From assembly GCA_047495785.1 (NCBI GenBank), contig JBLDXI010000025.1:930001-994000 (forward strand): a stretch of 64,000 nt of DNA, written 5' to 3'. Within the stretch, counting starts at the first letter, position 1, and each line of letters starts with the position of its first letter. A program made the translations under genes and the position numbers. Shown in pieces: positions 21,011-56,389 of the stretch. The notes under the pieces are model-generated. The model was not told the origin of the DNA. It ran no database searches and saw nothing but the letters and a program-made list of their open reading frames with translations. Source of the stretch: Lepidodermella squamata. Its lineage: Eukaryota; Animalia; Gastrotricha.

Positions 21011-24000
21011 TTATTGCATATATTGATTGATTTGATCGTAACTCATGAAGTGGCTACCCCCGCCGCATCGATACCCACCGCCAATATCAAACCACTGAAA
21101 ACCAGCCGGGCACAATCCAAGCTGTTTCAGCTTCATTTGCATAGCAAGTTTTCGCTCTTGTTCCTGTCGCAATTTCTCAGCCTCCTCCTCCAATCGCTTT
21201 CTCTCTTTCTCGATTCGTTCGAGCTCTTTTCGCCGCTCCTCCTCCTTTAGCCGCTCAGCTTTCGCCTTAGCTTTGGCTAATTCCTCAAGTTCGCGTTGCT
21301 TTTCGGCCAACTTTCGCTTCTCCTCCGCATCGCGTTTCGCAGCGGCTATCAATTGGGCCCAAGTTTCATCGGAAACTCCGTGATCTCTTTTCCCGAGTCC
21401 TTCGGGTACATTTTCTGGCTCTTTTTCTTCAATAGGTGGTTTCTCTTCAACAGGTGGTTCTTCCTCCTTTTCCACTTCAGTCTCGATTTCGGTTTCCATT
21501 ATTACGGGTTGATTTTCCTGGTTTTGCGTCGCAACGTCTCCGAATAATTGCTTCATTATATTCGATTTATTCTCCGCTTTTTCCATAATTTTTGATTGTT
21601 CGATTCGTTCCTTCAAATCAGTTTCCAATAAATTAATGACAATACGACCGGGTATTTCAATCACATCACCGGCTGTAATTTTACTCGGATCGAGCTCGTT
21701 GGCTGCTTTGGCAATCAATTTCTTGACAAGATTTCCGATATCGCGGCCATTTCCCCAACCGCGTTGATTTCGCAATTTTTCAAAAATTTGCAGAATTTCA
21801 ACATCGGCCGATTCCGCGATAGACCAGCCGTCCTTTTCGAGGGATTTCTTGAATAAGCGAAGGCATTCCTCCTTCGAAAATGAATGAAAGTCAACCCGGC
21901 CTGGGAATCGACTGGCCAAACCAGAGTTGGCGTTCAATAAACCGGTAATATCCTCCTTATACCCGGCTAAAATGACGACGATTTTACCGAAAAATTCCGG
22001 TTTCGTCAATAAATCAACCAATTCATCCAAGGCTTCCTGGCAAAATTGGCCGCCCGCCTTTTTAGGATCCAATCGATACGCTTCGTCGATAAATAAAACC
22101 CGGCCAAGGGCCTGTTCCAATTTCGCCCGGGTTTTCGGGGCGGTTTGGCCTACGAATTGGCCGATCAGTTCAGTTGCTGAGGTTTCAACAACTTCGTCAC
22201 TCGCCAACATTCCAAAGGCTTTGAACATCCGACCGACCCGCCGGGCGACCGTGGTTTTCCCGGTTCCGGGCGGGCCCTGGAACAGGAAATTCATCGGAAT
22301 TGTTTCGCACGGATCGCGGCCTCGAGCGATTTGAACAAGGGCAGATTTTTTGTACCCGTTCATCGTAGTTATAATTTGATCGCAAGACACTAAATCCGAG
22401 AAAAATTTCTCGATTTCGACATTCAGTTGCGCCCCGCCGTGTTCTTCCGTCCACTCCGGGTCGAAATCGACCGGGGCGAGTGAGTTCATTTTCGCCCGTT
22501 CGGCGGGCGAGAATTTTTTCAGCCGATCTTGCATGCGTTGAACGGCATTTCCGATCAAATTTTCCACTGAACCAGCGTTGCCGAAATTCGGCCGACGTCT
22601 CTCTTTTTCCAACAGAGCCATAGCGGCTTTTTGAGCCTGGATCGGGCATACCAGGCCGCGTTTTTGAATTTTATAATTCAAAATTCGAGTCAGTTCGTCG
22701 ACGGAATAATCTTCGAAATCGAAAGCCACCTCCGGGCTGAAGCGGCGCGAGAGGCCCTGGTTCGAATTTCCGATCATCGTCTCCATTTCCTTGCGATAGC
22801 CCAGCATTAAAACGCACCGATCGTCGCCGGGCACGTTTTGCACCTCGCCGACTATCGTGTCGATGACAGCGGTTCGGTAAGGGTCGGTGACGTTCTCGCC
22901 CGCGTAAAGGCCGTACGCCTCGTCGATGACCAGGACTTTTCCGAGACTGTTCTGTAGAATCGCTTTCGTTTGATTCTCCGACTGGCCAAGAGCGGATCTG
23001 GGGAACAAAAAGATATTAAAAATTTGAGAAATCAATTGTTTAATCTAGTGTTAATTTGCGAAATTTCGAATATTCATCGCCCTTTACTGTTCGCAAGAAT
23101 TTTCAAAAATATTCAAAATGAACCTTCTAAATTTTTTCAATTTCGAATTTTTGACGTCAAAATCTTTGACATAATCAAAATTATCGAATAAATCGCGATC
23201 AGTTTCATCACCTCGCGAGGGGCGTCCTTTCTATTGCATGACCCCGGTAAGGAAGATCCAGAGCGTATCCTGGTGTTCGCCTCTATGGAATTCATTCATC
23301 TCGCCTCGTCGCGTTGGCTTTCGTCGCGACTTCCAAGGTGCCCCGCGTTTTCGCCCTTCTCAATACCGATCTCGAATACCCGAAAATGGCAGAGCTCTAC
23401 CAAAATTTCGAGAAGAAGTGGATCGGCGTGTGGCGACGCAAAGTGTCCCTCCGGAATTTGACTTCGAGCCCTGGAACATGGTGAAGCGCGTTGAAAATTC
23501 GCTACCTCGCACCGACAACTTTCACGAGGTTGATGGAGGAGAGGGTAACCCATCGATTCGGCCTTATCTCCTTGGATGCTATGACAATTTCTGGGGGCTT
23601 AGAGATCATTGATAAAGGCAATACAACAGTTGGAATGTCTCTCGACGAGCCTGGAACACCGGCTACACAGCGTTTGTGACTTGGGATGGAGCTGGAGAAA
23701 ACTGGTCGTAGCACAACGGCCTGGTTGATCATTTAGATTTTTCTTATTCATTTTCTGATGGCTTCTCGCATCCTTCGCTTCGCTTTATCGCAGGGTGTCA
23801 ATGAATTCTATCCAGCAAGAGCAAATCAAGATGCGAATGAAATGCTCTTTGATCAATTTCGGCGCGACGGGAATTCGTCCAAATCGAATCCTACGTTTCG
23901 GGCGATCCAGCGCCGTGCCGGTACATTGCGAGTCGCCGGTGGTTACTGGGGCGTTTCTCGCGGAGGGAATAAAGGGTGCCGTTGGATCTTTGGATCTCAA

Positions 24001-27000
24001 ATGTGCTCGAAAATTGAAAAGCATGGCTTGGGACAAGGCGAAAATGGCAAATGTTCATCGACTTCACCAACCCAATCACTTAACCTTTGATTACAACATG
24101 GTAGCCTGGATTTCCAGCTTTATTACCAAAAAACTGGGCCTGAAACCAAGAGCAGCTTTCCATAGCGATTACGTCGAACTTCGATCGCACGACGATGTTT
24201 TATGCGTTGTTACGGTGGCTCTTTCTGGGTCCTATCGTGATGACGTGTTTACCATCAAAAACCTGGATGAAGTTGCGCTTCGTTTGGGCCATCAGGTTGC
24301 AAAAATCGAAGATAAATCTATTATCTCTGAAATATTTCCTGGCCAGAAGAACTGTTCGAATTTTCCGCGAAAAATTCGGGGCTAAATTTAAACGAAACTA
24401 GTTTTTGATTTTGAAAAAATAAAAATATGGGCGCGAGATGGTTAAAATCGGTATTACGTTGTTGGCTATCTCAGTTCGTATTCCGTCAACTGAGTCTCGA
24501 CAATTCGGAAAACGACAACTCAGCCATGACAACTCAGCCTGCGACAACTCAGCCTTTAAAAATATTGTTTCAATTTGCGACATCTCGGCCCGCGACAACT
24601 CAGCCTTTTTCTAATTCTAATGATATCGCGACAACTCAGCCTACGACAACTCAGCCTTTATTCCATTATACGAAATTACTTAACTCTATTACCATGCGAG
24701 CGGAGCGAGCATGTGAGCCGGACTTTATAGTTTGAAGGCTGAGTTGTCGTAGGCTGAGTTGTCGCGATATCATTAGAATTAGAAAAAGGCTGAGTTGTCG
24801 CGGGCCGAGATGTCACAAATTGAAATAATATTTTTAAAGGCTGAGTTGTCGTGGCTGAGTTGTCAAGGACTCAAATGTCTGTGGACCTTTCAGCTATCAC
24901 AATATTCTCGCTATTTAGTAGCGTACTATTGTGAATTAGCTATTGCGTCGGCCGGCATCAAATTTATAAGCGTAAAATTATAGCCAGCTAATTTCATTTT
25001 AAAAAAATTAAAAATTTTAAAATTGATTACAATTAAAAACTCACCCGACAAAATCACTCGGCTTTTTCAGTACGACTTCGCCATTCGACAGCAGACCGAG
25101 ATCCCTCAAAATCTGGCCGTACAACTTGGCAACTGTGGTTTTTCCCGTACCAGGATTGCCCAGGAAAAGTCGATTCAACGTCACATTCCACAAGGGCAGT
25201 TGAAGTTGTTCACGCTCGAAATTCGTCTTCACGAGTTCCATCAACTGTTGAACAGACTGTTTCACCGAATTCAGACCAATCATGCTCTTTAATTCAAGCC
25301 AAGCGGCCGATGTTGACAGCGCATCGATCGGATCAGGGCCGAGTAGGTCTTGTTTCGTGATTAGAAAGTCGTTCACCGAAACAACGCCTTTCGACCTTTC
25401 ATCGGCTACTCGCGTTGCTTGGCGTTCGAGAACCTTCTGAAATTCGTTTTTCACAGCGCGAGCATTGCCAAAACCAACAGAATCGCGGCCCCGACCGATT
25501 CTCGTGACCAAAATCTAAAAAATATTTAGAAGATTGCAGTGGAGAACATGCGATAGTAATTTGTCAACTCTTTGAGCTAATTCGAGCATCAAAATATATT
25601 TTTTATATAAAAATAAAATCGAAAATATCTCCAATAAATGCTCATTTCGTTTTCGTGTATACTTTGTTCTGCCACATGTCGCACACACTGTTTTCGAGCA
25701 ACGTTTTAAGCAAAAATCACGAGCTAAGAGTGCAGGTCGAGAAAATACGCCCAGCTGATTTTGAGTGTGCTGTTTGCAACGATCTAATTCATCCTGAAAA
25801 TCGTTTTCGATGCTATGGTTGCAATGTTGCTGTTCACGGCTTTTGCACCGGCTTCAACAAAACTGTCCTGCGGACATTGGCGAAATGTAGCAGAATGTCC
25901 TTAGGTTTTCTGTGCTTCGGTTGTCGCTAATACTTAAGTATTATCATCCGCAGCTGTTGAACATGCTTCTTTCCATACCGCAATTCTAGCCACTGAATTG
26001 CTTTTGCAACGCTACGTTCGTGAAAGCTGCGATTCCTGTGGACGTCGACTTACGGCAGCAGGGACTGAAGCCTGGATGAGGACGTATAAATTGTCTATTC
26101 TGGGAGGCAAGACATCGTCATCAGCGGCTCAGCTGATCCGACAAGTGTCGAGCTCAATCTACGATCTACGGTAAGCTGCTACCGTTCTCACAACTTGGCA
26201 AAGGTTTGGATAAAAGCCTGCTGAAGCCAATAAGCCATCTGGCAAGCTGATGGAGCTGCACAAATTACGTTGGAAAAACCCGTATGGATTTCTGACAGCT
26301 CCCGATCTCCGGAAGAAAACATTGGGTCTAGTGATTGGTTTCGGATTTCGCCTTCTGTCGTGTTTCTCGCTCGATCGCCAAATCAACAGAATAATAGTTT
26401 GCGGAAATCGGCAAAAAGACAAAACAGCAAATCGAATGACCAAACATCAACAACAATTTATGGGCCCAGATGCCTTAACCTCGTCTGAGCGGTTAAATGG
26501 GACTAATTATTTATCAAGATTGGTCCTATGCTGCCATCTACATTCTTCAGGGTATGGATCTGCGGGAGGTGGTCGAGCCACTTCCCGCAGGGGCCGCTCC
26601 AGGCGCGCATCCAGCCACACGCATCCCCGAAGTCCCGAGTCTCGAGGATTTGGCCGTCGAAGCTGCACGAGCAACCGCCGCCGAACGGCAGGGCCGAGTC
26701 GAGCTCACCCTTCGCGAGGCAAACGCTGCCGTCGTCGCTCATCCCGATGAATCCGCGCTGCTCGTGATACCCAGGGCTTTGCGATCAACGCCGCCGTTCG
26801 CTCTAAGCGAACTCGCGAGCAAGAACTCGCCGACAAACGTGGTTGGCCGCTTCGATTCTAGTCCGCCTAGTAGGACCAGCTTACTAGTACTACATCACAA
26901 GAGCGGCTGGTGATGATCCTCGCGCTATATTGGCGGCGCTCAAGGCCGAACGGACCTCGGCTGCCACCGAGTCGAGGCTCCTAGCTCGTTTTCACAGCTT

Positions 27001-30000
27001 TGCCATGGCCCCGGGGCCACACGAAATAATAAATCGAATAAATGGCCGAAGTCTGCAAACAAGAAATTCGGGTACGCAACTCTCCGCAAAACGGCTCATT
27101 CCATGTATGACACGATGGTGATGAACGTGGCGACCCTGCAAGACCTTTTTCGCACTGGTGCTCAGCAGTCAGCTCAGGTGAGTCTTGCTAAAACCCAACA
27201 CTGCACGGAAAATGACCGTCGTTGAAGGCAAGCGCAAGCGTTGCAACAAAAGCGGCCGAGGCAGGCATTGCCGGTGCCAGCCGTGTGACCCGGAAAATGC
27301 CGGTGCAATTACTTTGGAGTCATCTCTCGGTAAAAGAACAATTTACTACTTTGAAAAACAAGGGGGAAATGGAGCCAAATTGCATCGCCTACGCATCATA
27401 CTTTCACCAGTGGTTAAATCAATTCTTGCCTGGAAAAAGATTGTTTTGAACCTCTTTTACGATATTCATTGCAATATAATGCATAATTCGGAACCTTGAT
27501 TGCTCAGAGGACTAATTTTTTGGCGAAATTGCTCAATGAATTAGTTTAAAGAGCAATGACCAAGGTTATTGGCGCGATTGCTCAATAACCTATTCCAATA
27601 GCTATTGACCTAAATTGCGTAATGAACTACGACACCAAAATCGTGATTACGAATTATGATATGAGATGAGTGAATTTAAATTTGAAGTTTGAGAACAAAT
27701 ATTTGATTCTTTGCATTTTAGCGGTTTTGGGGGTAGAACTATATTTTTGTTACAGGATATCGATGTAACCTGTGCTCAACAAGGGCTCAACGGAGACATA
27801 AGATGAATATCAAAATTTCCATCGATTGATTTGATTTTTTTCTCTTACCTTGACCCATTGGCCGTTTAGTCCTTTCTCGAATTCGAACGGCTGAAGGCCC
27901 TGATTATCTTTCGCAGTTTTCTTGAAAATCTCATGCAACTGCGCGTCGGAGTAGTCCTCGAAAATGAAGTTGTACGGAAACCGACTCGGCAGCCCCTCGT
28001 TGTACTCCATCAATTTCTCGATTTTATTCTGATAACCAGCAAAAGCGACTACGAGTTTCCCAATATTATTCTCAACCTCCGTCAACAGGTGATCCATGAC
28101 ATGCCGACCAGTCAGCTCGGTTTTCGGGTCGAGTTGATACGCCTCGTCGATGAACAACAACCCACCGCCTTCTTTGTAAATTTCATCGAGCAATTTATTC
28201 AGCCCATCAACGCCCTCGTGGACCAGTTTAGCCCCAGTCGTTTCGACAAATTTCGACCCGGACAACGCGTCGAGGTCGGCCAGAAATTCGGCGTAAATTC
28301 TCGCGACAGTCGTCTTGCCTGTTCCTGGATTGCCGCACAGGCAGATATTCAGCCGCTTGTCGGTCAGCGGACGGCCTTGCCGCTTCGCCAAATTGATCGA
28401 GTGGTAAATATTCCAGAAGGTCTCCTTAATTTCACCGAGACCACTCAGTTTCAGCAGCTTCTCGAAACCTTCATTCTTCACTTTTCCGCCGGATTTTCGC
28501 TTCTCTTCGTCCCAAAATTGAGCGATTTTTTCGGCTAAATCAAGTTGTTTAGCAGGGGTTGATACAAAGGCAGTTTTTCGTTGTTGATCGAGCAGATATT
28601 CGATAATTTTCACGATTTCGTTGCTGAATTCGCCGGCTTGATAAGCCAAGAACGTCAATCCAGCGGCATAGCCAATCGACTTGAAAGACTGATTTTTCAT
28701 GAAAGAAAAAATTAGGCAGGATGCGAATGAAAATATCATCGGGTGGCAGTTTGATGCGAATTTCGGTGGATTTTCGGTGATTTCTTGCTCTAATGAGGCG
28801 TCGTGCAGTTGCGAACGGCAAGCCAGGCAAAGTAGGGCTTTCTCGCCAACTGATTTTTCATCCAATTTTTCGAAGAACTTCAACGCGTCCATCCACTTGT
28901 TCTCCGAAATTAATTCCAAACCGCGGCGGAGAGCTTTGGGCAGGGGCGATTTTTCGGCGGAAAATATTTGTGACGCCAAATTTTCATCAAAGCTGAAGAA
29001 TTTGGTGAGAATCGCATTATCCGACCTAAAGTTATAAGAAATATTATAAAATTGTGAATGAACTGAAACAAATTCTCACAGCTACTTCAACTTATTAACT
29101 TTATTTTGAAAATTTTATATAGTATTTTGTGATATGGTAAATTTGATTCTACCAAGTTGATTTTTCATCTTTATTGACTCTACTTTCCCTGTTTAGGAGA
29201 CTCTTCCTGCCAAGTTTCATTGCCGAAACTCCCGTAGGCATGGCACTTTCCCATCCAGTCAACTAGGAGTCGCAGCTATCCAAAGTCAAGATGCAACTGG
29301 TGAAGGAAACCCTGAGTAATTTGAAAGCTGGGTTCACCGCTTTTCACGATTTTCGAAATCCCCAAGCTCACAACTCTCCGCAAATTCAAGCTTGAAGACA
29401 GATTCAGAGCTGGCAAGTCTGTACTTTTCGTTCCTCGATTACACCATTTCGCTGGATTGGTGGAGAGGATTCCAAGTCTCCTGAAATAGAGCTTCGAACC
29501 GCCAAAGACTCATCAGCGACTCAGAACAATTTTGTATAATTAAGCTGGGCCTGCCTCTTCAACGTCTCATGTAATTTTTATATTATTCGACTTCCGATAT
29601 TATTTATAGGCATGGCATGGCATGGCATTCGGGCCTAAATTAGGCCTAAAACGGCACGACTGGATAGTAGCTATTGTCCTCGGCTGCGCAATCGTTACGT
29701 CAAATCGAACAGGCACGTTTTGCGGCGCTACAATCTCTGAGTGGGAAAACCGGACAACTGCCACCGCTGCTGGTATCATTCAGGGTGAGAGCTGCCATAG
29801 CCATCGCCAACAAGGAAGGATTCAAACCTGATTTCGTTGCGTTCTGCATCGCATGTCACCCGGAAGCAGGTCTCCGCTGCGAACAGTCACAATGCTTGGC
29901 GATGGCGCCTGATTTTTCAGAATGCTATCTTTCTTTCGGGGGTTATGGTACCCAGTAATTGGCCATTGGTAGCCGCTGCTCAATCTCCAACTGCCGAAAC

Positions 30001-33000
30001 AAAAACCGGTAAATCTCCCGCCTCTTCGGCGAAAATCACCTCCCAATTTGATGATTCTGAGACAGTTTTTAAAAAATATTCAGCAAATTTGATAAAAAAC
30101 GGAAATCAGGAAGCTGCCGAACATCTTCGAACCTCGAGTCGATTACCGATGGCCCAAACAAAGAAAATGACTTTGAAACTCAAACTGTGATTAAGATTTC
30201 AAATAATCAGCCCAAAAAATCGTCAAAAAATCGGCCCAAAATTCTCAAAAAAATCAACAAGATCAATGAGTAGAAAAATTATGAAATTTTCTCTCCCATT
30301 TCATTTACCAATATTAAATTTTCTTAAGCGCCTACTTAAGCGCATCCATTCATCAATACCGCCATTCACAATTTTATTTGCTATTTTACCAACTAATGGT
30401 TAATTACGTTGCCCATCTTCCATCCCAGCTCTTTACAAACCTGACTTTCCGCCCTCTTTAACCTACTGTGCTTATTGTTAATTAGAACTTATTTTACCTA
30501 TGTTATTGTATCGGCAAGTTGCATCGGTCCGCACACCTTCACCGTACCTGCCTACTGCGCGATCGGTATTTTGATGTTTACTATCAATATTCTCGGTTTG
30601 AAATTACCAGTTTCACATAACAGTTACTCTTGCCGCTATCATAATTATAGCGCCTCCCGGCTGACCGCTTCGCCTTAATACGAACCCGGTATGCAACCTC
30701 CCCCTCTAATATTTGACCTGCCTTTCTTACACATAGTATCATTTTCAGGGCCTTGGTTTCACCTGAAATAAAAGGCCTCTATCGCCAACGACCCGTTGTG
30801 CCTTTTTGGTCTCACTGTTACAGGTTTTCTCGCCGAACTGTCCGGCAGCGTGTGGTATTTTGCGACAACCAAGCGTGCGTGATGCTGGTAAACGACGCGA
30901 GCAAGCGCCCGAAACACGCACGTATAAGACTATTCTCCATCCGTGAATTAGTGAAATAGGATATATCGGTTGTTGTGAAATGGATGTCCACCTAGGAGAT
31001 GTTGGCTGGACTGTTTACGAAGCCACTGCCTGTCCATACCTTCGCCAAATTGCGGGGTATGATCGGTATCAATTGATATATCGATGGGGTGGCGTAAGGT
31101 TAGCCGAAGTGGAAGTGACGTAATATACATTTGAGAAAACATGTATATAACTGTGTGAAGGTTAAATGAAAGACGCGCCGGGTGCGCGAGTAGGAAAATA
31201 TGGGGTCGTGGATGGGAAAGGCCTCTTTGCCGCCAGACTCTAGATATTTAACAGTAAATTCACCGTTTGTTTTTCCAGCTGTTTCCAGCAAAATTTTGCC
31301 GATATGGGGAACTCAAAAAAACCTAATAGAATTTTGTTAGTAACTTCCTAATCCGATCCGATTTCAATAGTAGTTAGGAATTTTTACGATCCCACGCGAT
31401 AAAAAAAGAATAAAAAATAAGGTAAATTGAACGTACTTCACTTCTTTGACCTGATCTGCAAGTTCCTTTGCCACAAATGAAACCAGGTCTTCAGAATGAG
31501 AAATCTGGGCACTATCCGAAGAATCAGGCTCATCTTTAGCGTCTTCAACCGATTGATTTTCTGTTGATTTTGCACAATTTTTATCCTCAATTTTTTCGGG
31601 GACTTTCGCAGGGCCATTCACAGGGCTAGAAGTTCGATTGTCGTTGGAAGACTTGGCAGCATTCGCCATTATTTGCTGCTTTTTAGCCGCAAACTGGTCG
31701 TTCAGTTCTTTCGCTTTTTCCTGCAATTTTTTCTGAGTTTCCGCTTGTTTTTGAGCCACCTCGATCGCGGTAATTTTTTGCTGATTGTCAAGCTTCATTT
31801 TCTGAATCTCAGCCTTTTCGTCCAAGTCGAGCTGTTTCAACTTGTCCTGCTCTTCTTGCAATTTCCGCTGTTTCTCAGCCAATTCCTGCTGATGGGCCGC
31901 GTTTTTCCTCGCCAGTTCAGCCGCGTTCTTTTTCGCTAATTCGTCTTTCTTCGCAATCGCAATACAGGCTTTGCAATTTCGATCTAAATCGAGTTTCGAA
32001 CCGCATTTCAGCATCATCGAATGGCCTTTCGAGCAGAAGAACTCTTCGAAAGCCGAACAAGGCACTAGGTCGTGATCACGCGGGATTCGGTGGCAGGTTT
32101 TCGAGCACGTATGCTTGCCGCATTTGAGAATTTTCCCGCACGGAGCGTCGCAACCGCCGTCCGAAGTTTCAACATCGAACGAGCTTGGTTTAGCCAGGCA
32201 GTTGGTTCGATTATGAATCGGGCAATGGGCCATGAAGCCCGGTTGAATCGCGTCTTGTTGTTTGAACAACTCAATGACTTTGCACCACAACTCGCGGCCT
32301 TTTGCAGATCGCGCGTTTTCGAATGTTCGCATGTTACCGATTAGGATGAGCCCATTTCGAGCTCGACTCAGCAGGACGTTGACTCGTTCTGGCTGGCCGA
32401 CGAATCCAATATCGCCGGTTGGGTTACTGCGGACCAGCGATGCAATCACAATATCAGCTTCTTCGCCTAAATTAAACAAAAAATAAGAGGATTGCGAAAA
32501 TCCAAAATTTTGAAGAAATCTCAAGATTATCTTTGCAAATTGAGACCATCAATTATTTTGAAGGGTCGAAAATTTGCACCACTAAAATGAGGCTCCACTG
32601 CAAAAAAAATCGTCACGTAACTAAATATTTTAAAAATTCCTTGATACACAAGATCTCGGACTCTCCATCGATTCAGTATGACTAATCTTGTTCAGCAAAC
32701 AAATACCCTCCGTATAACATTTGCAGATCATTCAAATCTCATATATTGCGCCTTCTCAGTCAATTCTGAGGCAAGCGGTTGTTAATAACAGCAACAGTAT
32801 CTGATAAAAATCGTTGCGAATTCTACGATAATCGAGCTCTATCTACTTCATTTTAGATTTTTCAATGGCGAACCAATTCAGCTCTAAGCAATTAAAACAG
32901 CACGCTGTAAAACTCACGGGTGTGTTGGAGCACTGGAATTATCCTAACAGATTACTTCGAGACGACGACTACTATGAAGAAGGCCGTGATTTTCGCGAAG

Positions 33001-36000
33001 CGAAAAATCTTTCCAGCCATGCAAGGAAGAAAACACATGCTGACATCTTACGTTATCAATGTAACAACTTTCCTCAAAAAGGCGGCTAAGAAAAATTGTA
33101 CTGGCAAATTTCTACGACACGATCCTTGTTCATCAACCTGGGCTCCCAGGCATTGTCGAGGTCATCGATCAACGGAAAAACTCGAAATGTCCAAAAGGAT
33201 AGCACACGACTTCCGGATGTTCAGAAAGAAACATTTGTGATGCCTGATATCAAAGGGTCATGAAGCGGTAGTCCAAAAATTGTGGGTTCTGGTATTTTCG
33301 CTCAGAGCTGGTATCGTCTCTTCGAACAGGACCGGTACCCTCTGTGGCGCGACGATTTCGGAATGGGAAAATCGGCATGTGGACAGGAATAGTTTCCCAA
33401 GGCACGTCTTAAATTCGTCAATGCGTAGCCTACTACGGCACGTGCGGAAATTTTGCTCTGAGCTGAGCGAACCAAAAATGCATGCAGATATTAAATAATC
33501 TGCGATTCACGATGATTTTTGTGGTAGCGTTCCTTATTATTCTTAATTTCCTTAATTTATAATAAGACGACCTAGCTAAAAGCTAATAATCAACAATTTT
33601 TAGAGTTTCGAGATTGAAAGACGGAAGTCTTCGCTGCATAAGCCTCTCTCAAAGGGAAGCCTACTTTTCCCATATTTCGAGGTATCAGTTTTGTTCAAGC
33701 CCGGGTTGGTTCTACGGTAAGTTAAGTCTGCACTACTAAAACTTCCACTACTTCAACATCAATGCCGTTTTAATTTTTGAATACTAATATTAATCTTCTT
33801 CATTTTTATACTGGTTGCTACATCGATTTCGATATTGATCAGTCAATTTTTTTTTATGATTCTTCAATTTTAAATTCTTTCGTAGCCTTAAAATTTTAAA
33901 TTTTCTGAGCTCTGCTCTTCTGTGCGTTTTGGCTCCTTAAATAAATAGAAGAATAAATAACAATCGCAGTAAAAAGTTATTTTCATATCGATACAAATAT
34001 TAGCTGGAAAATGCTTATAGCATTTACCTTCAAATTTTGCCATTTTCCATATTTATAAAAGCTTTTTTCTAAAATTACCTTGATAATTATCGATAGTTGA
34101 AACTCGAATAACAGGCAGCTTGTTTTTCGGCGTGATCGACGGCAAATTACGAGAAGAATCCAAGCCGAATCGATTCAAATCAGCCGCATCAAGTTCCGAT
34201 AACACCACTTCACAAACTTTGGCCAGTCCTTGCCTCAGCGCGTGAAGTTGGGCCAAATACGGCGTCAGAACCACCAAATCCTTGCCGTCATAGCCCTGTC
34301 GCAGCAAATACTCGGCGATTTTCGCAACCATCGCAACTTCATGCGGGTTGATTTTCGACAGCGTGTCATCACCAATTTGCTTATCGATCGAATCGTCACT
34401 GCCCTCAGGCTCATCGTGGTTGATGAACATGACATTTCGACTGACACCTTGAATATCCGGGCGATTTTTCGTGGAATCCGCATCTTCCAGTAACGGATAG
34501 GTCATATTTCGGACGAACGCCGAAATTTCAGGCCGCATTCTATGTTGAACTTTCAGCGTGACATGCGGAAAATCTTTCAGGGCGAGTCGCTCGAAAAGCG
34601 ACCGGTTGAATTTGAACGGTCCAGACGACTCGACAGTCAGTGAATAATTGTTCAATTTCGGCCGCAGTTGCTTGTGATCGCCGATCATTATCAAATGCTT
34701 GCAGTTAGCGGACATGCTAGTAATGACGTGGGGTTCAAGGATTTCGCCGGCTTCTTCCATGAGCAGCACCCCGGCGTTGACTGCATCGAGTTTGCTCGAG
34801 TACTTCGCGGCGCCTGTTGTCGTACAGCCGATTATTCGTTTTGATTTCAGCAGGCGAATCTCCTCTACCTGGTTCAATTCACTGAGCTCATTGACCAATT
34901 CGTCGTATCTAAAAAGAATGAAGAAATAAAAGATTCAGTGCTGCTAGCAAACCCTTCCGAGAACAAATTGAAAACTTGAAGTAGTCGAACAAGAATCTCG
35001 AAATAATCATTTAAAGCCCCGCGTAATGGAGCTATCAAAATAGCTCAGGGCTAACTTGATTTTACGTCCTCCTCAAGGGCAATCTGCTGAAACCCTTAAA
35101 TATGTATATTCGCCCTCTGCTTGAGTACTGCTCTAGCGTTTGGTCGCCTCATTTAACAGAAAACATTGTTGCGTTTGAAAAGGTGCAGTTCTACTTCACG
35201 TAAAGGTGGTAGCCATCCTTCGCCATATTTATAATTGGCCTTGTTGGGGATCCTTTGTCAACAACTATTCGCCTCAACCGTTTGAGAAGAGTTTCGATAT
35301 CGACGCTATACTTCAACCGTATGTCGTGCCGGCATCCATCATGCAATTTGTTGGCGAACCTGCAATCGCTGCCTATCTTAGGTACGCTGATGCTCGTCTG
35401 ATCCCAGCTATATCCAATGATGAACGTGACGGGCCTATCTTATATCAACGCTGTGACCTTCATCCAAACCTTGATGCTCCGCAACGCTGTTTCGAATGTT
35501 TTGAGCGAATGCGACCTATGAATCCTCACGTTGACCTAGCCTATCCATCTCAGTTCTATAAGAACTATATCCCTATATACGTGGGGATGAAACCGTCCTA
35601 GACATCGGCGGAGATGGACGAATTCAAAGTCGCCTGTCGTCAAGAGCATTGAAGGAAAAAATCTTTACAGTCAATCCTGATAGTGCACTTCGTCTCAAAA
35701 TTCCTGTTAATTTCACTAACCAACGCTTCGAGACCTACAAACGTCTGCATACGCTCGGATTCCTTTCCCATGCTGGCTACTACCTTAACGCCAATGAGTT
35801 GGCCAAGCTGGCTAAATTCAGAGCACTTATCCAGATTCACCACACAACCAACGAACCTTTTTCTTGCGAAGGTGGAGAGAATGAAAATTCTTCCCGGTGG
35901 CGATATTCAAATGGTGCTCAAAGAACGTAATAACGAGGTCACAGTTTACACACACCGTCCTTTCACGCAGGCGATTCCTGATGGACACGTTCTCCTCTAC

Positions 36001-39000
36001 CGTCATTTTTATCCCACTCCTCACATTGAAGTTTTGATTACTGCACAGCCGGACTTTGCGTCCGAATTCATGACCCGCCTTCAACGCGGTGAAAGCCGAA
36101 TCAAGCTCAATCCTGGAGATCCATCTGTTTTCAAATCAACGAAACATTTCTGATCGGATACTATGAAATTTACACACTTCCTTCGTCTAGTTTGTGTGGT
36201 CGGTGCCGCTGGTCTTCGTCCTGGGGCGCTCGCCAATCTCTCTATTCTTGAGTTGTCGCAATCTCGTTTTAATTTAAATCCTTTCTTCGATTCTAAACCC
36301 ATTTTCCGGGTTATTTCTAAACGCACAGGACTTTCTTCCTTCTTCAATGTCGCAACCTACGGAGCTCCAACTCCCCTTTTCCAAGGTTTGGCCCCTGTGC
36401 AACAGGGCTATTTACCAGATACATCCTGTCCTACCTGTTTAACAACAGGCCAAATTACTCTCAATGCGAACGATCCCAAACTGTATTACCCCCGAGCATT
36501 TATGTGGAAGGGTGATCAGATCAGATCATCTTTACTTGATAAATTCACTTAAAAATTTACAAGCTTCTTCGGCGCCAATTATCAAGATCGAAAATTGCCA
36601 CTTCAATTTATTACTTGAATTATGGAGAAATAAGAAATCCTGATTTTCAACAAAAATATTCCCTGAGGCTCATACATACGTATAATATGTCTGCATACGT
36701 ATATGTCGAGCTTCGCCCATTCTATCAGCCCATTCCAGGGCCAATTCTCCCCGACAAGAGGCCCTGTACTACGTACTCTCTCATTAGGCGAAATGCATAA
36801 TTTGGGGGAATAAACAGTGGGAAGGAAAAACAACCCGGCTGTAAAAACTCAAGCGTTTTCTTAGGTGAAAATATTTTTCAGATAATTTCTTTAGAAAGCA
36901 AATTAGCCCGTTGATTTTTTCTGCTAAAAATTCGCGAAGATGAGAAAGCTGCGAAAAGAATTGAGAATTTTCCAATATTTGACATTTGGCATTTAATGAC
37001 GCCCCACTTCGTCATGGACAAAGAAGAAATGCGATGCTTCCTTGGAATCCTGCTGCTTTCTGGGTATTCACATGTCCCTCATCGCCGACAGCACTGGTCT
37101 GGCGATCCTGATCTCCACAATGCTGCTGTTGCAGATGCGATGCGCCGGAACCGCTTTGATGAAATTATGCAAAATATACATTTGCAAGGTAAATTTTATT
37201 TGCTATCGGAGAAAGGCTGAATATTTTAGTTATTTCTTAGACAACGACAATTTGCCCCAAAATGATCGGTTTGGCAAGGTTCGCACCTTATCAGATCTGC
37301 TGGGCCATCGATTTCTGCCCAACCTTGCACCCGGTGAACATCTGGACGTCGACGAGTCCATGATCCCCTAAATTTCTATATTTTGTTGCAATTCGTTTTA
37401 GCTGCCCGTCGTCAGAGTAAAAAAACCCAACTACCAGTGTCCTAAATACGACCGCTTGCTTGCTGCAAGTAAAATGATATTTAACCGCAATTTTGGGAGA
37501 CTGCAACGTGGTGCGATGTGTTTTCACCTTGGTATCAAAGAAACTTATATTTTAAACCGGCATATAGCACAATAAATTGTGGATATAAATTAGAGACCAA
37601 TAAATCTTTCAATTCACGGCTCGAAAGTAATAACATTTTCGGAATTGATTGAAAAAAACACTCACCTGGTAAGCGATTTCTCGAGCTGCTCCATGTAAGG
37701 CTCAACTAACTCAGCCCGCCACTTCGCAACCATTTGATTCCGCTCCTCGGCAGCCAACTTCCAGACACCCTGCGATTGGTCATCACGCCAATTTTGCATC
37801 GTTTTAACCAACCCGCGATCTTCACCATTCAACCACTGCCGCCATAAATAATCAGGTGGTAGCGATTTTCCAGCCTTGCCCTGAGCCAGTTGAAACCCAC
37901 CACTTTGTTTGGGCAATTTGAACGCTTCTACCGTATCGTTATCGAAAAGATGGGCGAAATCTTCCATCCGATACGTTGCATTGTAGAAGGCCAAATATTG
38001 CTGATTTTGAATAATTTCACCTCGAATTACGTCCATTCGATCGCGAAGAGACCAGTACATTCGATTCGGGTCACGTTGACCCTGGTTTCTCAACAAATTT
38101 TGCAGCATGAATGGCTTGATTTTATCATCACACTTCTCCATACCACCGATTCGAACGATCTCTCGAGGAGGCAGGCCGAATTTCATTAAATCAACCAAAA
38201 ATTGATCCAAGGCGTGATTCGTATAGCAAACGATCAGAATCGTTTCATTGGTCGAATCGAAAATTATTTTCCCCAACATAGCACCGCAGTAAGATTTTCC
38301 AGTACCAGGCGGACCTTGAATTAAGGCGACACGATTTTTGAGACTAGAAATCACCGCTTGAAGTTGACTCGAGTCGAGAATTGTTGATTGAGTTTTCAGG
38401 TTCAAAATCGGAGTTAAATCACTTTTCGAATTGATTGATTCCAATTTTTGCAAAATTTCCCCGATTCTAGGATTTTCCTCAACATAATGCGGAAATTCGC
38501 TTTTCGAATCGTGAAGTAACTCAGGCTCGAATGGTAACTCGGAAATTTGTTTCAGCCGCTCGAGAACCGGAGTGAATGCGAAAAATGAGGCCGATAGTTG
38601 GACAGCCTTTAAATTCGATTGAACTCGCCCAACTTCGAGAACAGCCCATCTCGCGTCCTTCTTATCGAAAAAATGAACATCGATCGATGGCGGCTTTTTC
38701 AGCAAATCTTGATAATCCCGAGCATTCACAATGCCAAGGCCAACCAGTCCTTCATCCCTCGAGCCAAGATTCCTCACGAAAGCTAGAATCGAGTCGATTC
38801 TCAGAAAATTCGCTCGTTCGTCCCAGAATTCTTGTTTCGCCTTTTCGATGTCTTTTTGTGTCAAGTCAGGTGTTAATCGTTGTTTTAGACCGGCCGGCTC
38901 TTCGAATTCCATTTTAAAGCCGACGCCAAATCGTTGATTGCAACTAATTTCGCTGAATTTGATTACGTTTAGAGATCGAGACTTCAAACGAGCGGCCAAT

Positions 39001-40592
39001 TTCGGGTTGTAATTTTTATTTGAAGTTTTGCCGACGATTAGCAGTGAATCGAGTTCTTCTTTCACGACCCGGTTAATGTCTTCCCTCAACAACCGGAAAG
39101 ACCAGTCCAGGTAGCTTGAAACTTTCCGATTTGGCGGTTCTCGAGCCTCTAGAACATCGTCAGTTCGGGGTAGGAAAGGCTCCTCGTCGCAAACTAGTTC
39201 ATCCGAGGTCGGGTAGGGTAAAATTTCGTGAAAATCCACCTTGTCATTCGAATGCCGCCAGCCAGGCTGTTTCATTCGAAGCGAGTCGATAGTTTCAAGG
39301 GTTTGGGCTTTTTGCTTAGCCGGGGCAGGTTGGTCCTCGAATGCATCGAAAAACTGGTCGACTTGATCGGAACCGTTTGAAGCTTCGCTTTCGTGGACCT
39401 GGTCGAGCAAGGTGTTGATTTGGTCTGAAACACCTTTCGACATTGGATATTCACCGGTTGCAAGGGCCTTGGCAAGTCGCTTCACGTGGATATTTTTCTT
39501 CGCCTCCAAAGCAAAATCATCTCCGCCTGGAAATTATTAAAACAACATTAAAAACAGCAAAGATTTAGGTAAATCATTTCCAAACATTTTCAAAAATTTT
39601 AAATATAACATTTTTCCATCGGTCAATTCAAAGATTTTGAAACAGTCCAAGTATTTTTTTAATCCTAAATTGTCCCCATAACAAAAATTCATTTTTTCAA
39701 TTTTCAGAGAAATTTTCAATTTTCAATTTATTTTTACTCAAAGAAAAATGTCAGAAACTGTTTCTGATAAGATTTCTAACTCTTAAAAAAAACTAGCGAA
39801 TCTGAATTTTCGCCTGCAATATTTCCAAATTTAAATTTAAATTCAGTATTGACTAGAAATGTGATTTTAAGGCAATTCATGTTGATTTAACAACGCGAAA
39901 TGCCTGTAAATATATTTCTTGCCTTTGATTATTTGCAAAACCAGCCAGCCAATATTCATGCAATGCTCTTGGTCCAATTTGCGATCGATCACGTAATCGA
40001 CGAGTTGGTCGAAAAGAAACGGCGCCTTGAATATGGTCCTCAGCAGCTTGACAGCACTTGCACCTCGAGTCGATGAAATTGTTAATCTTCCATCGTTTCC
40101 AACAAATTGAATTAGAGGAATGACAGACTTTTTCACGAAATCCAGGTTATTTTCGATAGAAAGCGACTGGCGCAAGGCTTTCAAGCCGTACTCGCTGGCT
40201 GTTAAACGGCTCAGAGTCTCCATTTTGTCTTCACTAGCTAGAATGTAGGCGATAAATTCTCGGGCGTCTTTTTCCGATTGAATTTTATCATCATCAGCGG
40301 AAGCATCCAGCAGCCAGTTGAACTTCTTTTCGGTCATTGAGCCGATTGCAGGGCGAGATTGCCGCATTATTGGGGGCGGTATCACAATGGGTGGTCCGGA
40401 AAAAGTGTTTTGAGAACTCGTTTCTGAAGCGATACATGAAAATATAATACTAAAATCCAAATTTTTAAACTAGAAGCTACCTCTCGGAAGATCACTGCGA
40501 AACGAAGTACCAGCTCCGTTTTGAGGCAGGTGTTGCTGCCGACCGCCACCTCGGTTGGGACCTTGACCACGCCGGTTGCCGGGGTAACTCAT
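21011..40592 (-). CDS. ZNFX1/UPF1-like SF1 RNA helicase fused to three CbxX/CfxQ(SpoVK)-type AAA+ ATPase modules, ~2655 aa, 8 exons
   Basis: Exons 40592-40481, 40423-39923, 39526-37666, 34908-34079, 32466-31437, 29025-27849, 25514-25045, 22997-21011; all phases compatible, total 7968 nt, no stops. Helicase motifs QGPPGTGKS, CYTNHALDQF, MEEAGE, IGDHKQLRP, QHRM, STIDNYQGEE, RVNVLLSRAR; NF-X1-like CGKHTCSKTCH; three AAA sets (GNPGTGKTT/FIDEAY, GNPGTGKTT/VIDEAY, GPPGTGKTT/FIDEAY, each with GL.(S/R)RF and GN.(R/G) lid); C-terminal CPAGFQW...GGGYRCGGGSH. Confidence 0.9.
23234..23612 (+). mobile_element. MULE transposase remnant (internally deleted) in intron 7 of the helicase-AAA gene
   Basis: ERILVFASMEFIHL (segment preceding the DDE domain) and PPEFDFEPWNMVKRVENSLPRTDNFHE, matching the animal MULE 'P.F....WN.......PRTNN..E' motif. 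Confidence 0.65.
24492..24872. repeat. Palindromic MITE built from GACAACTCAGCC units
   Basis: ~130-bp near-perfect inverted arms (~24530-24658 and ~24734-24864) around a ~75-bp spacer; multiple GACAACTCAGCC/GGCTGAGTTGTC units. Confidence 0.8.
25655..25930 (+). mobile_element. PHD-finger coding fragment in intron 6, probably element-derived
   Basis: CAVC...CYGC...VHGFC...FLCFGC (C4HC3) on the strand opposite the host gene, followed by degenerate coding sequence. Confidence 0.55.
26250..27180 (+). mobile_element. Possible tyrosine-recombinase remnant (intron 6)
   Basis: KKFGYATLRKTAHSMYD...DLFRTGAQQSAQ (27061-27177) resembles the HxLR-box and second-His region of tyrosine recombinases; upstream LGLVIGFGFR may be the first catalytic-Arg box; frames are broken. 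Confidence 0.35.
29610..29960 (+). mobile_element. Tyrosine-recombinase-like remnant (intron 5)
   Basis: AIVTSNRTGTFCGATISEWENR, homologous to the fragment at 33280-33400; resembles the first catalytic-Arg box (R.G....T..EW). Confidence 0.5.
32865..33400 (+). mobile_element. Tyrosine-recombinase-like remnant (intron 4)
   Basis: GIVSSNRTGTLCGATISEWENR preceded by frameshifted coding-like sequence; nearly the same peptide as ~29690-29752 with mostly different codons. Confidence 0.5.
35206..36800 (+). mobile_element. Degenerate coding tract with tyrosine-recombinase-like motifs (intron 3)
   Basis: Chain of frameshifted ORFs including LVCVVGAAGLRPGALANLSILEL, YVYVELRP and TTYSLIRR; antisense to the host gene. 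Confidence 0.45.
36996..37371 (+). mobile_element. piggyBac (PGBD-like) transposase fragment containing a 52-bp intron
   Basis: EMRCFLGILLLSGY...HWS...MRRNRFDEIMQNIHLQ|DNDNLPQNDRFGKVR...LDVDESMIP; GT-AG intron 37189-37240 restores the frame; truncated just after the first catalytic Asp. Confidence 0.85.
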
Positions 40593-45426: not shown

Positions 45427-48400
45427 ATGGCTTCGAACTACTTTAATCGAACTCAAGCTGGATCAAGGTCTCCAGCTTCACCTGATCAAATAGGACTGAT
45501 CAAACTCGAATTTTCATCTCATCCCAAAGTACGTATCTATTATTTCAGTTTTTCAATATCATGATGAGTTTTTTGTAGCTTTTTTCGGAGAAGCAGTTTG
45601 CCGATTTGCTCGAAAGCGCCGAGCCGCCCGTGTTTGATCAGGCAATTTTGTTTCTGAATCACGTGCCCCATCGTGCTGATAAATTGGACACCCTACACAA
45701 GTTGACGACCTCAAAATATTTCGCTAATTGTTTGAAATCTTTTTCAACGGAGAACCTTACCCTCGAGCAAATTGAAGGCACCATTATTCCTCTTATCAAG
45801 TAAATTTTCGTTAATTTTGCTGATTTTTCATATTTTAAAATTGTCAGGTTCATAGAAAGTGAACGAATGCTCTACAGTGGTTCCGCTAGAATCCATGCGT
45901 CCCTTGAATTTCTATCGAAAATCGGCCTTAATTTATCCATGATGCAACGCTGTTTTGGTTTCGCCGAAGAGGAAATGATTTCGAGCGATTCGCTTCTGTT
46001 GATTTGCTGGATGTTTGCTCAACTGTCAAAGTCCGGCCGAATTCTATCGGTGTTGATCAGAGATTTAGCACATAAATTCGCCGACTTTCTGACCAAAAAA
46101 TCGCTGCCTGGATGGAAACAATTGACTGAAATGATCAAATTTGGCGCGAATGGGGTGACTGAATTTGAGCCCCTTGATTCAATGCGGAAAAACGAACCAG
46201 GATGGCGGCATGATAATGATCGAGATAATTTTCGAGAAATTGCTGTCTACCCAACTGCAGCCGAATTAATTTGCCCGGATCAGCCTTATCTTCCTGAAAC
46301 TGCGACTGTTTTCACTTCAAATCCTGATCAGGACTCGTATTTAAACTGGGCTTTTCGGTTGCTGCGGGAGGATGTTGTGAAATCGGTGAATGAAGAAATC
46401 GATTTGATCATGCGATATTCGACGAAGAAGGACGCGCCGGCTTGGACGAAAAAATTGCTAGGCCGGTTGGAAAGTCGAACACTTCAAGTGGCGGGATTTG
46501 CAGAATTTGCACTTGATCGACGAGCTGGACCGTGTTTTCGAATGGTTTTCCAACCACCTAATGGCCTGGCTAGTTTTCTGAGAAACAAAGGTAAAAAGGC
46601 TGCGTTCGATTATTACATGAAAAAACGGCCAAGTTTCCTGAAAGAAAAGTCGATCGTCGCTTTTGTGCGAGAAACTGGTAATAATTCTCGAGAAATAACT
46701 GCTGTTGGAGTCGTTGCCCTGCGCGATCCGAAACACCTGGAGAATAATTTCGTTTCAATTGCATTTTTCGATAAATCCCACGTTGAACGCATTTTACGCG
46801 AGGTTGGAAGTAGAACTGATGGTTTGAAGGCCATTCAACTCTCGGCTTCTTTTTTCGCGTATTCACCGGTTTTGGAGCGACTTAAAAATATCAAGAAAAT
46901 TCCGTTTTCCGACGAAATTTTGCTCGGGAAAATCGAATGCCCAACTCCACATCTATCACCGGGATATTCGTCTCTTTCTGTCGCTGATATCGCGGCTGCC
47001 TTGGAAAATTGCGATCCATCCAAAAATCTTGCCCCAATTTTGCGATTAGGCAAAGCACTGGTTTTAGATGCAAATCAAAAGGAGGCCGTGACATCTTGCT
47101 TGAGACGCCGGGTTGGGCTAATTCAAGGCCCGCCTGGAACTGGTAAATCATTTTGCGGTGCGATCATCGCGAAAATCATCCACGCCCATTCAAATGAGAA
47201 AATTCTTTGCGTTTGCTACACAAATCACGCATTGGACCAATTTTTGGAAGATTTACTCGAATTCGGCCTGCCAGAGCAAGATTTGGTTCGGCTTGGAAGT
47301 TCGGAGAAGATGAGCGAGAAGATCAAGGAATTCACGCTGAGAAGCCTTCTTGAGAAAAGCGATTTCAAACCTATTGGCCGTCACGTTTATGAGGCATATC
47401 GATGCTTGGAGGTGCCCGAAGGGTATTTGAAGCAATTATTGCCAGTGATTGAATCACTGAAAACTTCAACGCATTACGCGGAATTTCAACCGATTTTTGA
47501 CGCTGATACAGAAATGGCGTTTCAAGTTCCGGAAAGTACCGATGGGTTTCAAATCGTTGGCGGAGACGGGAGAGAAATTCAAGCTGATTACCTTTGGGAT
47601 CGATGGCTTTCAGGCCGAGATCGAGGCGTGTTACAAAATCGCAAAATTTCAGAAATTTCTCAAAAACTGTGGGACATTTCACCCGTGGAGCGATTTAAAA
47701 TGCTCAACTCGTGGCGGGAAGAAATTTTACGGCCAAAACTAGATGCTTTCGATCGCCTGGTTTCTCATTTCGAAAAGGCCAAATTACTCTTGGATGACGT
47801 TTATCGGCAACCGAAGATCAGTTTGCTGAACTCGAAGCGAATTATCGGCTGTACAACCACAGGAGCTGCTAATTTCGCGAAGGAGCTCGATTCAATTCAA
47901 GCCGGGGTCGTTATCATGGAAGAAGCCGGCGAAATTCTCGAACCTCACGTGTTGACGAGTCTCTCATCGAAATGCAAACATTTGATCATGATTGGCGACC
48001 ACAAACAACTGAGGCCGAAATTGAATGTCTACGAATTGGGCGTGGAAAGTCGAGGTCCGTACGAATTCAACCGATCGTTATTCGAAAGATTGGTCTTGAA
48101 TGGCTTCCCGCACGTCACTCTGCAACTTCAACACCGAATGCGGCCTGAATTTTCGGATTTGATCCGAAAAATCACGTATCCCGAGCTGAGAGATGCGCCG
48201 AAAGTTCTCGATCGGCCGAATTTGGTCGGGGTTGCGACGAATTTGGTGTTCATCACCCACGAACAGGAGGAAGGCATCGACCCGGCGATGGCCAAAGAAG
48301 GCGCTGTTGTTGACAATGTGTCGAAATTCAACAAATTTGAGGTTGAAATGGTGGCGAAAATCACGCAGTATCTGTTATCGCAGGGCTATCGCGGGGAGCA

Positions 48401-50192
48401 ATTGGTGATCCTCACGCCGTATCTTGGCCAACTTTTCGCCCTGAGAGAGGCGTTGCACAACCTTGTTGAGGTTGACTTGAGTGAAATGGATGAGGCTGAC
48501 TTGGGCCAGTTGGGGCTCGATGCGCGAAGTGATGACTCGGCCACGAATCACAAGTCTAATACTCGGGTTCGCATTTCTACGGTGGATAATTATCAAGGTT
48601 AGTGAAGACCTAAACATTTTAAAAAAATTTAGGAATGTTTTTAGACACCTTTTTTTTCATAAAATTTCAAGACGAAATCTCACTGCTGATTAACTTTCAT
48701 TTAATTCAATATCTCACCATTTTATTCGGTTATTCAACTGGTTTGGTTTATGTTAGGGTTTGAGGCAGGGTCTTGAAATTCGGGATGTGGATCTGATTGC
48801 AATAATTCGGTACAGAATTCGATAATTTGGCAATGAATTTATTTTATCCGAAATTTCTTGCTAATTAAAGTTTTGAAGCCAAGTTCCAAAATTCTATAAA
48901 TTAATTTGGATTTTTTATAAAACAAGCGGTAAATTTTTTATTCTAATGCAGGCGAAGAGGCCGATATTGTCATTGCCAGCCTGGTTCGTAGCAACAACGA
49001 AGGCAACATTGGATTTGTCGGCGAACCTGAGCGAGTAAACGTTCTTCTGTCTCGAGCTCGCATTGGCATGATTTTGCTCGGAAACATGCGAACTTTCGAG
49101 AGCGCCAAAACAAAGTTATGGCGAGATCAACTGATCCCACTTTTGAAGGAGAAAAACGCAATTTTCCCTGGTTTACCCGGCCATTGCAACGAGCATCAAC
49201 GCGATTTTCTACTGGCGAAACCTGAAGATTTCGCTAAATTAGCACCAAATGGAGGCTGCGAATTGGTTTGCGATAAATTGCTGCCATGCGGCCTTCATAA
49301 ATGCAAGCAACCCTGCCACCGATCTGCTCATTCGCTCCAAATGTGCAACGAAAAGGTCAAAGTCCACTGCCCTAATGACGAAAATCACCCGTTGATAACT
49401 ATTCTATGCAAAAGATCGGGCGATCTCGGCTTCATCATTCGATCTTGCATGGAGGATGTCCAAGTCAAATGTCCGAGATTTGAAAATCACCCGCTTATCA
49501 CAGTGAAATGCCAATTCAGAACGCACCCAATTTGCCCGACAAAGGCTTTGGTTAACTGCCCTTCAAATCCGAACCATCCTATGATTGCAATCGACTGTGC
49601 TAAATCGGACGATCTCAAATTGATCGCTAGGATGTGCGAAGAGCCCACGAGAGTTAAATGCCCGAAAAATCCGGATCATTCTGAAATCATCGTGCCATGT
49701 CACAGTGCTTCGTATTCGCAAGTTATCAGCCAAAAATGCAAGGATTCAACGCAAGTTGAGTGCCCTCGCTTCCCCGATCAACACCCGCTTGTTAAAGTTC
49801 CGTGTTACCAGTCGGAAAATGAGGGTTTTGTCAAATCCCAATGCGACAATATGGTGCCTGTTCAATGCCCTAAAGAGGAAAGTCACGCATTGATCAACAT
49901 TCCCTGCCGATCTGTTCAAAATAAATCGTTGATTCGAAAAAATTGCCAAACTCGAGTTCAGGTTCGCTGCTCGAGAAAAACCTGCCGCAAATCCTTGGAG
50001 GTGCCTTGCTCGATTTCGGAAAAACCGTCCGAAATCGAAAAACTTTGTTTAAGTGACTTCAACTGCGCAATTTGCAAGTCGAATTTTTCGGTGTCTTGTG
50101 CCACGGTTATTGAAAAAGATCCCATCTGCCCTACGTGCATGGAGAACAGGGATTTGGTGGAATCTTTTTCGGAAGCTGTGACCGTTGCTTGA
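45427..50192 (+). CDS. ZNFX1/UPF1-like SF1 RNA helicase, paralog 2, with C-terminal Cys/His repeats, ~1437 aa, 4 exons
   Basis: Exons 45427-45528, 45579-45799, 45848-48597, 48952-50192 (4314 nt, phases compatible). All SF1 motifs intact (QGPPGTGKS, CYTNHALDQF, MEEAGE, IGDHKQLRP, QHRM, STVDNYQGEE, RVNVLLSRAR); NF-X1-like LPCGLHKCKQPCH, then ~7 VxCP..H...C repeats; no AAA CbxX modules. Confidence 0.9.
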
Positions 50193-55995: not shown

Positions 55996-56389
55996 TCAGC
56001 ATAAAACTGTCCTCGAAAATCGCGGATTTTATAACTTTGAGAGCCTGCATCTCAATTTGCGCTACCTCCAGATTGCTACTAATGGCATCGATGCTGCATT
56101 TCAACATCCAATTATTACCAAAGTCATGTGGGCATGCTAACGTTGGCTTGCGTTATTAGGCGATAGATAACATCCAAACACGCAGATGGAGCCGCTGGGT
56201 CAAAATCCAGTTCGCATAAGCCTTTATTTCTTACTCCAAAGCAGCTAAGAAGAAGCAAACTATGATAAAATGAATAATCGGCTCATGCTAAAGCGCAGCT
56301 ACGTATGCGTCTCAATTTTCTCCTCACAACATTATTACTGCATGCATCTGTACTTTCTTCTCTCAGCATGATTACTGCACCTCACCACA

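Follow-up and report, generated by a model that had tools for sequence, protein, structure and literature searches.

ZNFX1 is a sensor of double-stranded RNA and a factor in the inheritance of small RNAs, and it has recently been recognised as an RNA-activated E3 ligase. Its domain layout includes a C-terminal E3 part (bioRxiv 10.1101/2025.10.14.682297). Across much of the eukaryotic tree there is a sister type of ZNFX1 that bears three motors resembling the AAA+ protein CbbX in place of the ZNFX1 ligase part, and we found no study in the literature, functional or otherwise, of this fusion between a helicase and three AAA+ modules. Here we describe a gene of this type, designated gene 1, from the gastrotrich Lepidodermella squamata. 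It occupies positions 40592-21011 on the minus strand of a 64,000-nucleotide stretch (hereafter the window) that corresponds to positions 930,001 to 994,000 of contig JBLDXI010000025.1. Gene 1 is one real, transcribed animal gene and, as a new member, extends to animals a eukaryotic family that is widespread and uncharacterised.

Structure and transcription of gene 1

The span of gene 1 is made up of long stop-free stretches on the minus strand that carry matches to helicase and AAA+ domains. When these are joined at splice sites chosen by phase, site quality and fit to homologs, they form eight phase-compatible exons (Table 1) with a coding sequence of 7,968 nt, which encodes 2,655 aa and contains a single, terminal stop. 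All seven introns are of the GT-AG type save the one between exons 2 and 3, which has a GC donor (AAAG/GCAAGA, the sole phase-compatible site there). Junction 2/3 is crossed by the uninterrupted open reading frame (ORF) of a neighbouring paralog, gene 3, with a gap of 3 residues, and junction 3/4 is crossed without any gap by another paralog, gene 2. At junctions 5/6, 6/7 and 7/8 the sequence runs on unbroken in every homolog, such collinear homologs being the only support for these three.

The remaining junction, 4/5, is supported by a spliced contig. A contig of run X1 passes from 32468 to 34081, which, allowing for 2 ambiguous bases, is exactly the exon 4/5 junction (34079/32466). Contigs of this run cover exons 5 and 6 (including 31540-32524) and are missing from most of introns 4 and 5; splicing is seen between exons 4 and 5, and no contig was seen over the exon 5/6 junction. 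The run also touches two intronic stretches, 27600-27800 and 29373-29569, at which the DNA run X2 has loose ends or threefold depth and which are probably repeats. In the DNA run, these stretches of introns 5 and 6, together with 30555-30751, have loose ends or elevated depth, and they probably represent repeats or polymorphic insertions.

The exons assigned to gene 1 might instead be divided between two neighbouring genes, with exons 1-5 forming a ZNFX1-like helicase gene and exons 6-8 a triple-AAA gene of its own. Such an arrangement would fit with the lack of any RNA contig seen over the exon 5/6 junction, the length (2.4 kb) and repeats of intron 5, the existence of AAA-only family proteins of 900-1,250 aa and the fact that the paralogs of gene 1 are without the AAA part. 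We nevertheless consider it quite improbable, as both parts lie on the same strand in compatible phase with no stop ahead of the exon 5 donor, and exon 6 starts partway through a conserved pre-AAA domain with no start codon at its opening. Moreover, the two nearest relatives hold the entire helicase-AAA fusion within one uninterrupted genomic ORF, and gene 3, which has no AAA part, retains the C-terminal motif of the family, which suggests deletion of the AAA part from an ancestor that carried the fusion.

Sequence variation within gene 1 could be surveyed from X1 and from a second haplotype that X2 contains. Of the codon changes in the variants listed, most of which fall in the poorly conserved coiled-coil linker, 17 are synonymous and 11 non-synonymous, and this partial list is a rough sign of purifying selection on gene 1. 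In exon 5, two X2 contigs of equal depth cover 31613-31976; one of them, with 33 differences over 364 bases and variants in common with X1, is a diverged second haplotype or homeolog. Between 27600 and 33500 the X1 contigs also contain many joints between opposite strands about 100 bases apart, and one contig links exon 7 in sense to exon 6 in antisense. These joints look like fold-back artefacts of the library or of the assembly.

Helicase, finger and AAA+ regions

The closest structure to the helicase exons is that of ZNFX1 (PDB 9q9z), the top match for exons 3, 4 and 5, with E-values of 1e-21, 9e-40 and 2.5e-19 as opposed to 4e-6, 7e-14 and 3e-7 for UPF1, a lead of 12 to 26 orders of magnitude. 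The likeness takes in a short conserved segment ahead of the helicase (ZNFX1 residues 399-479, a weak phmmer stretch of 17 bits), and the match of exon 5 extends over ZNFX1 residues 1277-1426. Judged by sequence, the helicase of gene 1 is a member of the ZNFX1 family of superfamily 1 (SF1), with a UPF1-like core. A PADLOC match reflected only a general SF1 likeness to MkoA of the Mokosh system.

Beyond the helicase, a Cys/His region (residues 1182-1270, positions 32227-31961) aligns to the first fingers of ZNFX1 (residues 1371-1426). The Pfam zf-NF-X1 profile gives no match to this region at E<=1 and scores E=0.06 in gene 2; PF25396, the Pfam model of the N-terminal ZNFX1 domain, finds nothing genome-wide, the gene cluster included. 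As for the E3 module of ZNFX1 (a Miz-like domain and an RZ finger), no Pfam or PDB relative of the tail or C-terminal motif of gene 1 was found; the 9q9z chain is without the ZNFX1 C-terminus, so that RNF213 chains and Pfam are the basis of this negative.

Exons 6-8 contain Pfam AAA followed by AAA_lid_6 three times. Exon 8 matches EccA1 (4e-35) and CbbX (2e-30) in the PDB, and the modules score best with the NCBIfam models for SpoVK, EccA and CbbX (88-233 bits, below equivalog cut-offs of 423-467). An AlphaFold model of exon 6 (predicted local distance difference test score of 82) has an AAA core preceded by a helical domain, and the modelled core of module 1 superimposes on CbbX 3syk with a Z of 20.7 and a root-mean-square deviation of 4.1 over 211 residues, ahead of RuvB, the next family, at 15.6. 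From their sequences, the modules are of the CbbX/SpoVK/EccA-type subfamily and, by the equivalog cut-offs, do not qualify as orthologs of these proteins. Walker A and B are intact in all three modules and invariant across homologs. A pore-loop aromatic of CbbX type ([FY]VG), read from the sequence, is kept in modules 2 and 3 and is missing from module 1.

The last 30 residues of gene 1 hold the motif CPxG[FY]xW...GGYRCxGGSH. In 105 homologs, which come from fungi, algae and amoebozoa, it likewise lies at the extreme C-terminus, with W, GG, G, two Cys and one His as its invariants. The possibility that it is an RZ finger was considered and discarded, as PDB searches with the single sequence and with a profile, as well as Pfam, gave chance matches only; no RNF213 chain was among the PDB matches of the profile.

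The original prediction, which was made from the letters of the window alone, is confirmed as regards the architecture. Its eight phase-compatible exons with an ORF of about 2655 aa are those described above, its UPF1/ZNFX1-type helicase is borne out by 9q9z as well as by Pfam AAA_11 and AAA_12, and its three CbxX/SpoVK AAA+ modules correspond to the three AAA and AAA_lid_6 units with intact Walker motifs. Its NF-X1-like finger is right only as far as the word "like" goes, given the alignment to the first ZNFX1 fingers on the one hand and the missing Pfam score on the other.

Table 1. Exons of gene 1 and other features of the locus (positions are those of the window unless stated otherwise)
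Feature	Position	Strand	Content
Exon 1	40481..40592	-	ATG at 40592; Gly/Arg-rich N-terminus, residues 1-37; without RNA or homolog support, the least certain exon
Exon 2	39923..40423	-	N-terminal region; GC donor
Exon 3	37666..39526	-	ZNFX1-like conserved N-terminal segment; helicase domain 1A; motif I GPPGTGKS 38315-38292; insertion; Pfam AAA_11
Exon 4	34079..34908	-	Helicase motif II MEEAGE 34760-34743; domain 2A; Pfam AAA_11, AAA_12
Exon 5	31437..32466	-	Helicase end; Cys/His NFX1-like finger region 32227-31961; K/E/Q-rich coiled coil
Exon 6	27849..29025	-	Helical pre-AAA domain; AAA+ module 1 (Walker A 28334-28299, Walker B 28160-28137); Pfam AAA
Exon 7	25045..25514	-	Module 1 lid; start of AAA+ module 2 (Walker A 25160-25125); Pfam AAA_lid_6, AAA
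Exon 8	21011..22997	-	Remainder of module 2 (Walker B 22936-22913) and lid; module 3 (Walker A 22276-22241, Walker B 22099-22076) and lid; acidic/coiled-coil tail; C-terminal motif 21121-21041; stop codon
Paralog gene 2	45651..50192	+	ZNFX1-like helicase without AAA modules; PDB ZNFX1 4e-67
Paralog gene 3	54278..63686	+	N-terminal and 1A parts; no detectable 2A, no AAA modules; C-terminal motif kept at 63489-63674
Paralog gene 4	G000:C25:994448-999703 (just past the window)	+	Helicase part without AAA modules
Ankyrin-repeat gene (exons)	2474-6284	-	Ank_2, E 1e-24 to 1e-30

Relatives and their distribution

To place gene 1 among its relatives, we searched 1.84 billion representatives with exon 8 as the query in HMMER and obtained 4,899 matches below 1e-30, with a top identity of about 51%. 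The order helicase-finger-AAA is shared by about 45 of the best 150. Named carriers of the fusion are found in the Dikarya (Ascomycota and Basidiomycota), in a chytrid and in Cymbomonas, Diplonema, Mastigamoeba and the chrysophyte Chlorochromonas; for Mesostigma and Chara only the AAA part was matched. Length-limited searches with exon 8 and with the helicase ORF of gene 2 likewise gave only fungal, algal and protist names among the rows listed, in keeping with a fusion of fungal or protist type as originally proposed.

Three relatives, P0017, P0041 and P0051, enter the analyses below. The ACOX gene adjoining P0051 is only 35% identical to the ACOX of the host, and the organism that carries P0051 is therefore not a close relative of the host. 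Just after the called end of P0051, an ORF (L001 12976-13494) still encodes an AAA lid, so that this closest relative must be longer than its 2,304-aa gene call, by way of a frameshift or a short intron. An origin from giant viruses was also considered and rejected, viral contigs having yielded only single-domain CbbX-like genes with 26-38% identity and no helicase.

Host and genomic context

The assembly comprises 121 Mb in 151 contigs, and the window lies on a contig of 2.48 Mb. The intronless HSP70 gene of the host is 74-78% identical to its mollusc, arthropod, tardigrade and vertebrate counterparts and 64-72% identical to the listed plant proteins, and host UPF1 scores 1391 bits against human UPF1 as opposed to 948 against yeast Nam7. 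These likenesses place the host among the animals and bear out the animal-like genome that had been suspected from the window. The TRIM and stefin neighbours that had been named as metazoan could not be confirmed, only weak IBR/FYVE-like zinc-finger and PAN matches being found.

As the nearest named relatives of gene 1 are all non-animal, contaminating or misassembled fungal or protist DNA has to be weighed as a source. This is barely conceivable, since the gene lies inside the 2.48-Mb contig with the same composition as the rest of the window, contains kilobase-sized GT-AG introns, shows even depth in the DNA run X2 over the stretch and is at most 53% identical to any fungal or algal sequence.

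The triple-AAA gene of the family is single-copy in the assembly. The only ZNFX1-like helicases are gene 1 and its three plus-strand neighbours, genes 2, 3 and 4 (Table 1), the next-best helicase match after this cluster being UPF1. The 121 Mb yielded no separate canonical ZNFX1, and zf-NF-X1 matches elsewhere in the assembly lie on contigs without a ZNFX1-like helicase. Genes 1, 2 and 3 have in common an intron position at residue 1102 of gene 1. The retention of the C-terminal motif by gene 3, which is without the AAA part, suggests that AAA modules were lost from the paralogs after duplication; gene 3 itself may be decaying or rebuilt.

Origin of the gene

Separate trees were made for the two halves of the protein, and both group gene 1 with the fusion family. 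In an AAA tree of 49 rows (quick search, mixture model), gene 1, P0017 and Chara cluster with a support of 98 and fall in a clade (96) with the chytrid and with a Dikarya clade (100) that excludes gene 1. In a second AAA tree, of 27 rows (careful search, LG+G4), the group of gene 1, P0017 and Chara (94/95) is sister to chytrid plus Dikarya (88/79) within a clade supported at 97/97. The helicase tree joins gene 1 to genes 2 and 4 (95), outside the Dikarya (99), the gene 1 group being unresolved with respect to Rozella, Rhodelphis, P0051 and P0041. Since the helicase and AAA halves agree, the fusion was inherited as a unit.

In these trees, gene 1 stands beside the fungi and not inside them, which is the position expected from descent from an opisthokont ancestor. 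Its branching beside the fungi, its seven introns and its three diverged tandem paralogs without AAA modules make it look like a long-standing resident of the host lineage. A recent transfer from fungi is unlikely given that gene 1 falls outside crown fungi and that, in its helicase part, it shares a clade with its tandem paralogs. Of the two origins envisaged in the original prediction, horizontal acquisition and patchy retention, what stands is either an old retention or a very old transfer.

The main rival to retention is thus an ancient horizontal transfer. In this view an ancestor of the host would have received the gene, with the fusion complete, from an early-diverging fungus, from an alga or from some other protist, and gain of introns, tandem duplication and loss of the AAA part in the copies would have followed. 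Such a history would account for the lack of a named animal homolog among the matches listed in any search, for the best identities being to a chytrid (53%), Chara, Mesostigma and other sequences, for Chara and P0017 being the nearest rows in the tree and for canonical ZNFX1 not being found in the assembly. On the other hand, gene 1 falls within none of the donor clades sampled (the fungi are monophyletic without it), it is only about 50% identical to each of its relatives, and it has seven introns, with one intron position common to three paralogs. Besides, at least five eukaryotic supergroups contain the fusion, which makes an old eukaryotic origin followed by losses equally possible. Such a transfer is a possibility to be taken seriously, though we find it somewhat doubtful. 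We favour differential retention of an early opisthokont gene, which is missing from animals among the named matches.

Proposed function

By analogy with its relatives of described function, the protein encoded by gene 1 is likely to be an RNA-guided remodeller of RNA-protein complexes with a role in RNA surveillance or defence. The helicase part would bind RNA and move on it, as ZNFX1 does. The triple AAA+ unit could form a ring, in the simplest case as a dimer with six modules (a triple AAA module dimer amounts to about 1,700 residues) in which four of the six pore loops would, judging from their residues, be CbbX-like. Such a ring might thread a protein tail through its pore, and ATP would be spent on pulling or remodelling a protein of the bound RNA-protein complex, much as CbbX pulls the tail of Rubisco.

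It is also conceivable, if rather unlikely, that the host replaced canonical ZNFX1 or never had it, and carries instead a cluster of an older ZNFX1 type, whose founder still combines RNA sensing with a six-module, CbbX-like unfoldase ring. If that were true, the cluster would represent an RNA-triggered, protein-remodelling defence motor that the host shares with fungi and algae and that is not found in animals among the named matches.

Taken as a whole, the account in which gene 1 is a transcribed animal member of the fusion family, was retained from an old ancestor and acts in RNA-guided remodelling has, in our estimation, about an even chance of being correct in all its parts. Several points weigh against it. 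The position of Chara beside the animal gene 1 in the AAA tree is not predicted by vertical descent. No X1 contig was seen to span the exon 5/6 junction, at which the helicase meets the AAA part; we infer the physical link between the two parts in RNA, and it is here that the single-gene claim is weakest. That X1 is RNA is only a guess, and X1 also covers some intronic repeat DNA. No animal homolog is present among the named matches listed, which are a minority of the top 120-150 and are dominated by fungi, and P0017, P0041 and P0051 could be animals or protists. Finally, the mechanism is drawn solely from the analogy with ZNFX1 and CbbX.

The discovery of gene 1 shows by itself no new mechanism. 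What it offers is an animal context in which the family can be studied and a clean case of retention versus transfer in small spiralian invertebrates.

Comparison with known systems

RNF213 resembles the product of gene 1 in its giant size and in having both AAA+ modules and zinc-binding elements, and it has an RZ finger in common with ZNFX1. The likeness is one of analogy only, as the AAA modules of RNF213 are dynein-like whereas those of gene 1 are of CbbX type, and neither an RZ nor a RING finger was detected in gene 1. The modules themselves are closer to CbbX (the red-type Rubisco activase), EccA1 and SpoVK, with which they share the AAA_lid_6 subfamily at E-values of 1e-25 to 1e-69. Unlike these proteins, which have one module per subunit, gene 1 encodes three modules per chain and fuses them to a helicase, and a Rubisco or type VII secretion context is lacking.

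With canonical ZNFX1 (the human protein, 9q9z) gene 1 shares the SF1 core and the conserved pre-helicase segment, and its Cys/His region aligns to the first ZNFX1 fingers of NFX1 type. It differs in having about two finger-like units rather than a long stalk and three AAA+ modules where ZNFX1 has its E3 part, and its exons score 80-140 bits against ZNFX1 as compared with 260-275 bits against the fungal-type proteins. It is with the latter that the correspondence is most complete: the architectures of Neurospora tetrasperma NEUTE1DRAFT_146869, Fusarium graminearum FGSG_02130 and Blyttiomyces KAJ3312151.1 are collinear with that of gene 1 from the helicase through to the C-terminal motif, and the fungal and protist fusion proteins are 44-53% identical to it over the triple AAA region of about 800 aa and 26-54% identical over the helicase exons. 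Gene 1 is set apart from these fusions by its animal host, its seven introns, an additional Gly/Arg-rich first exon and its branching outside crown fungi.

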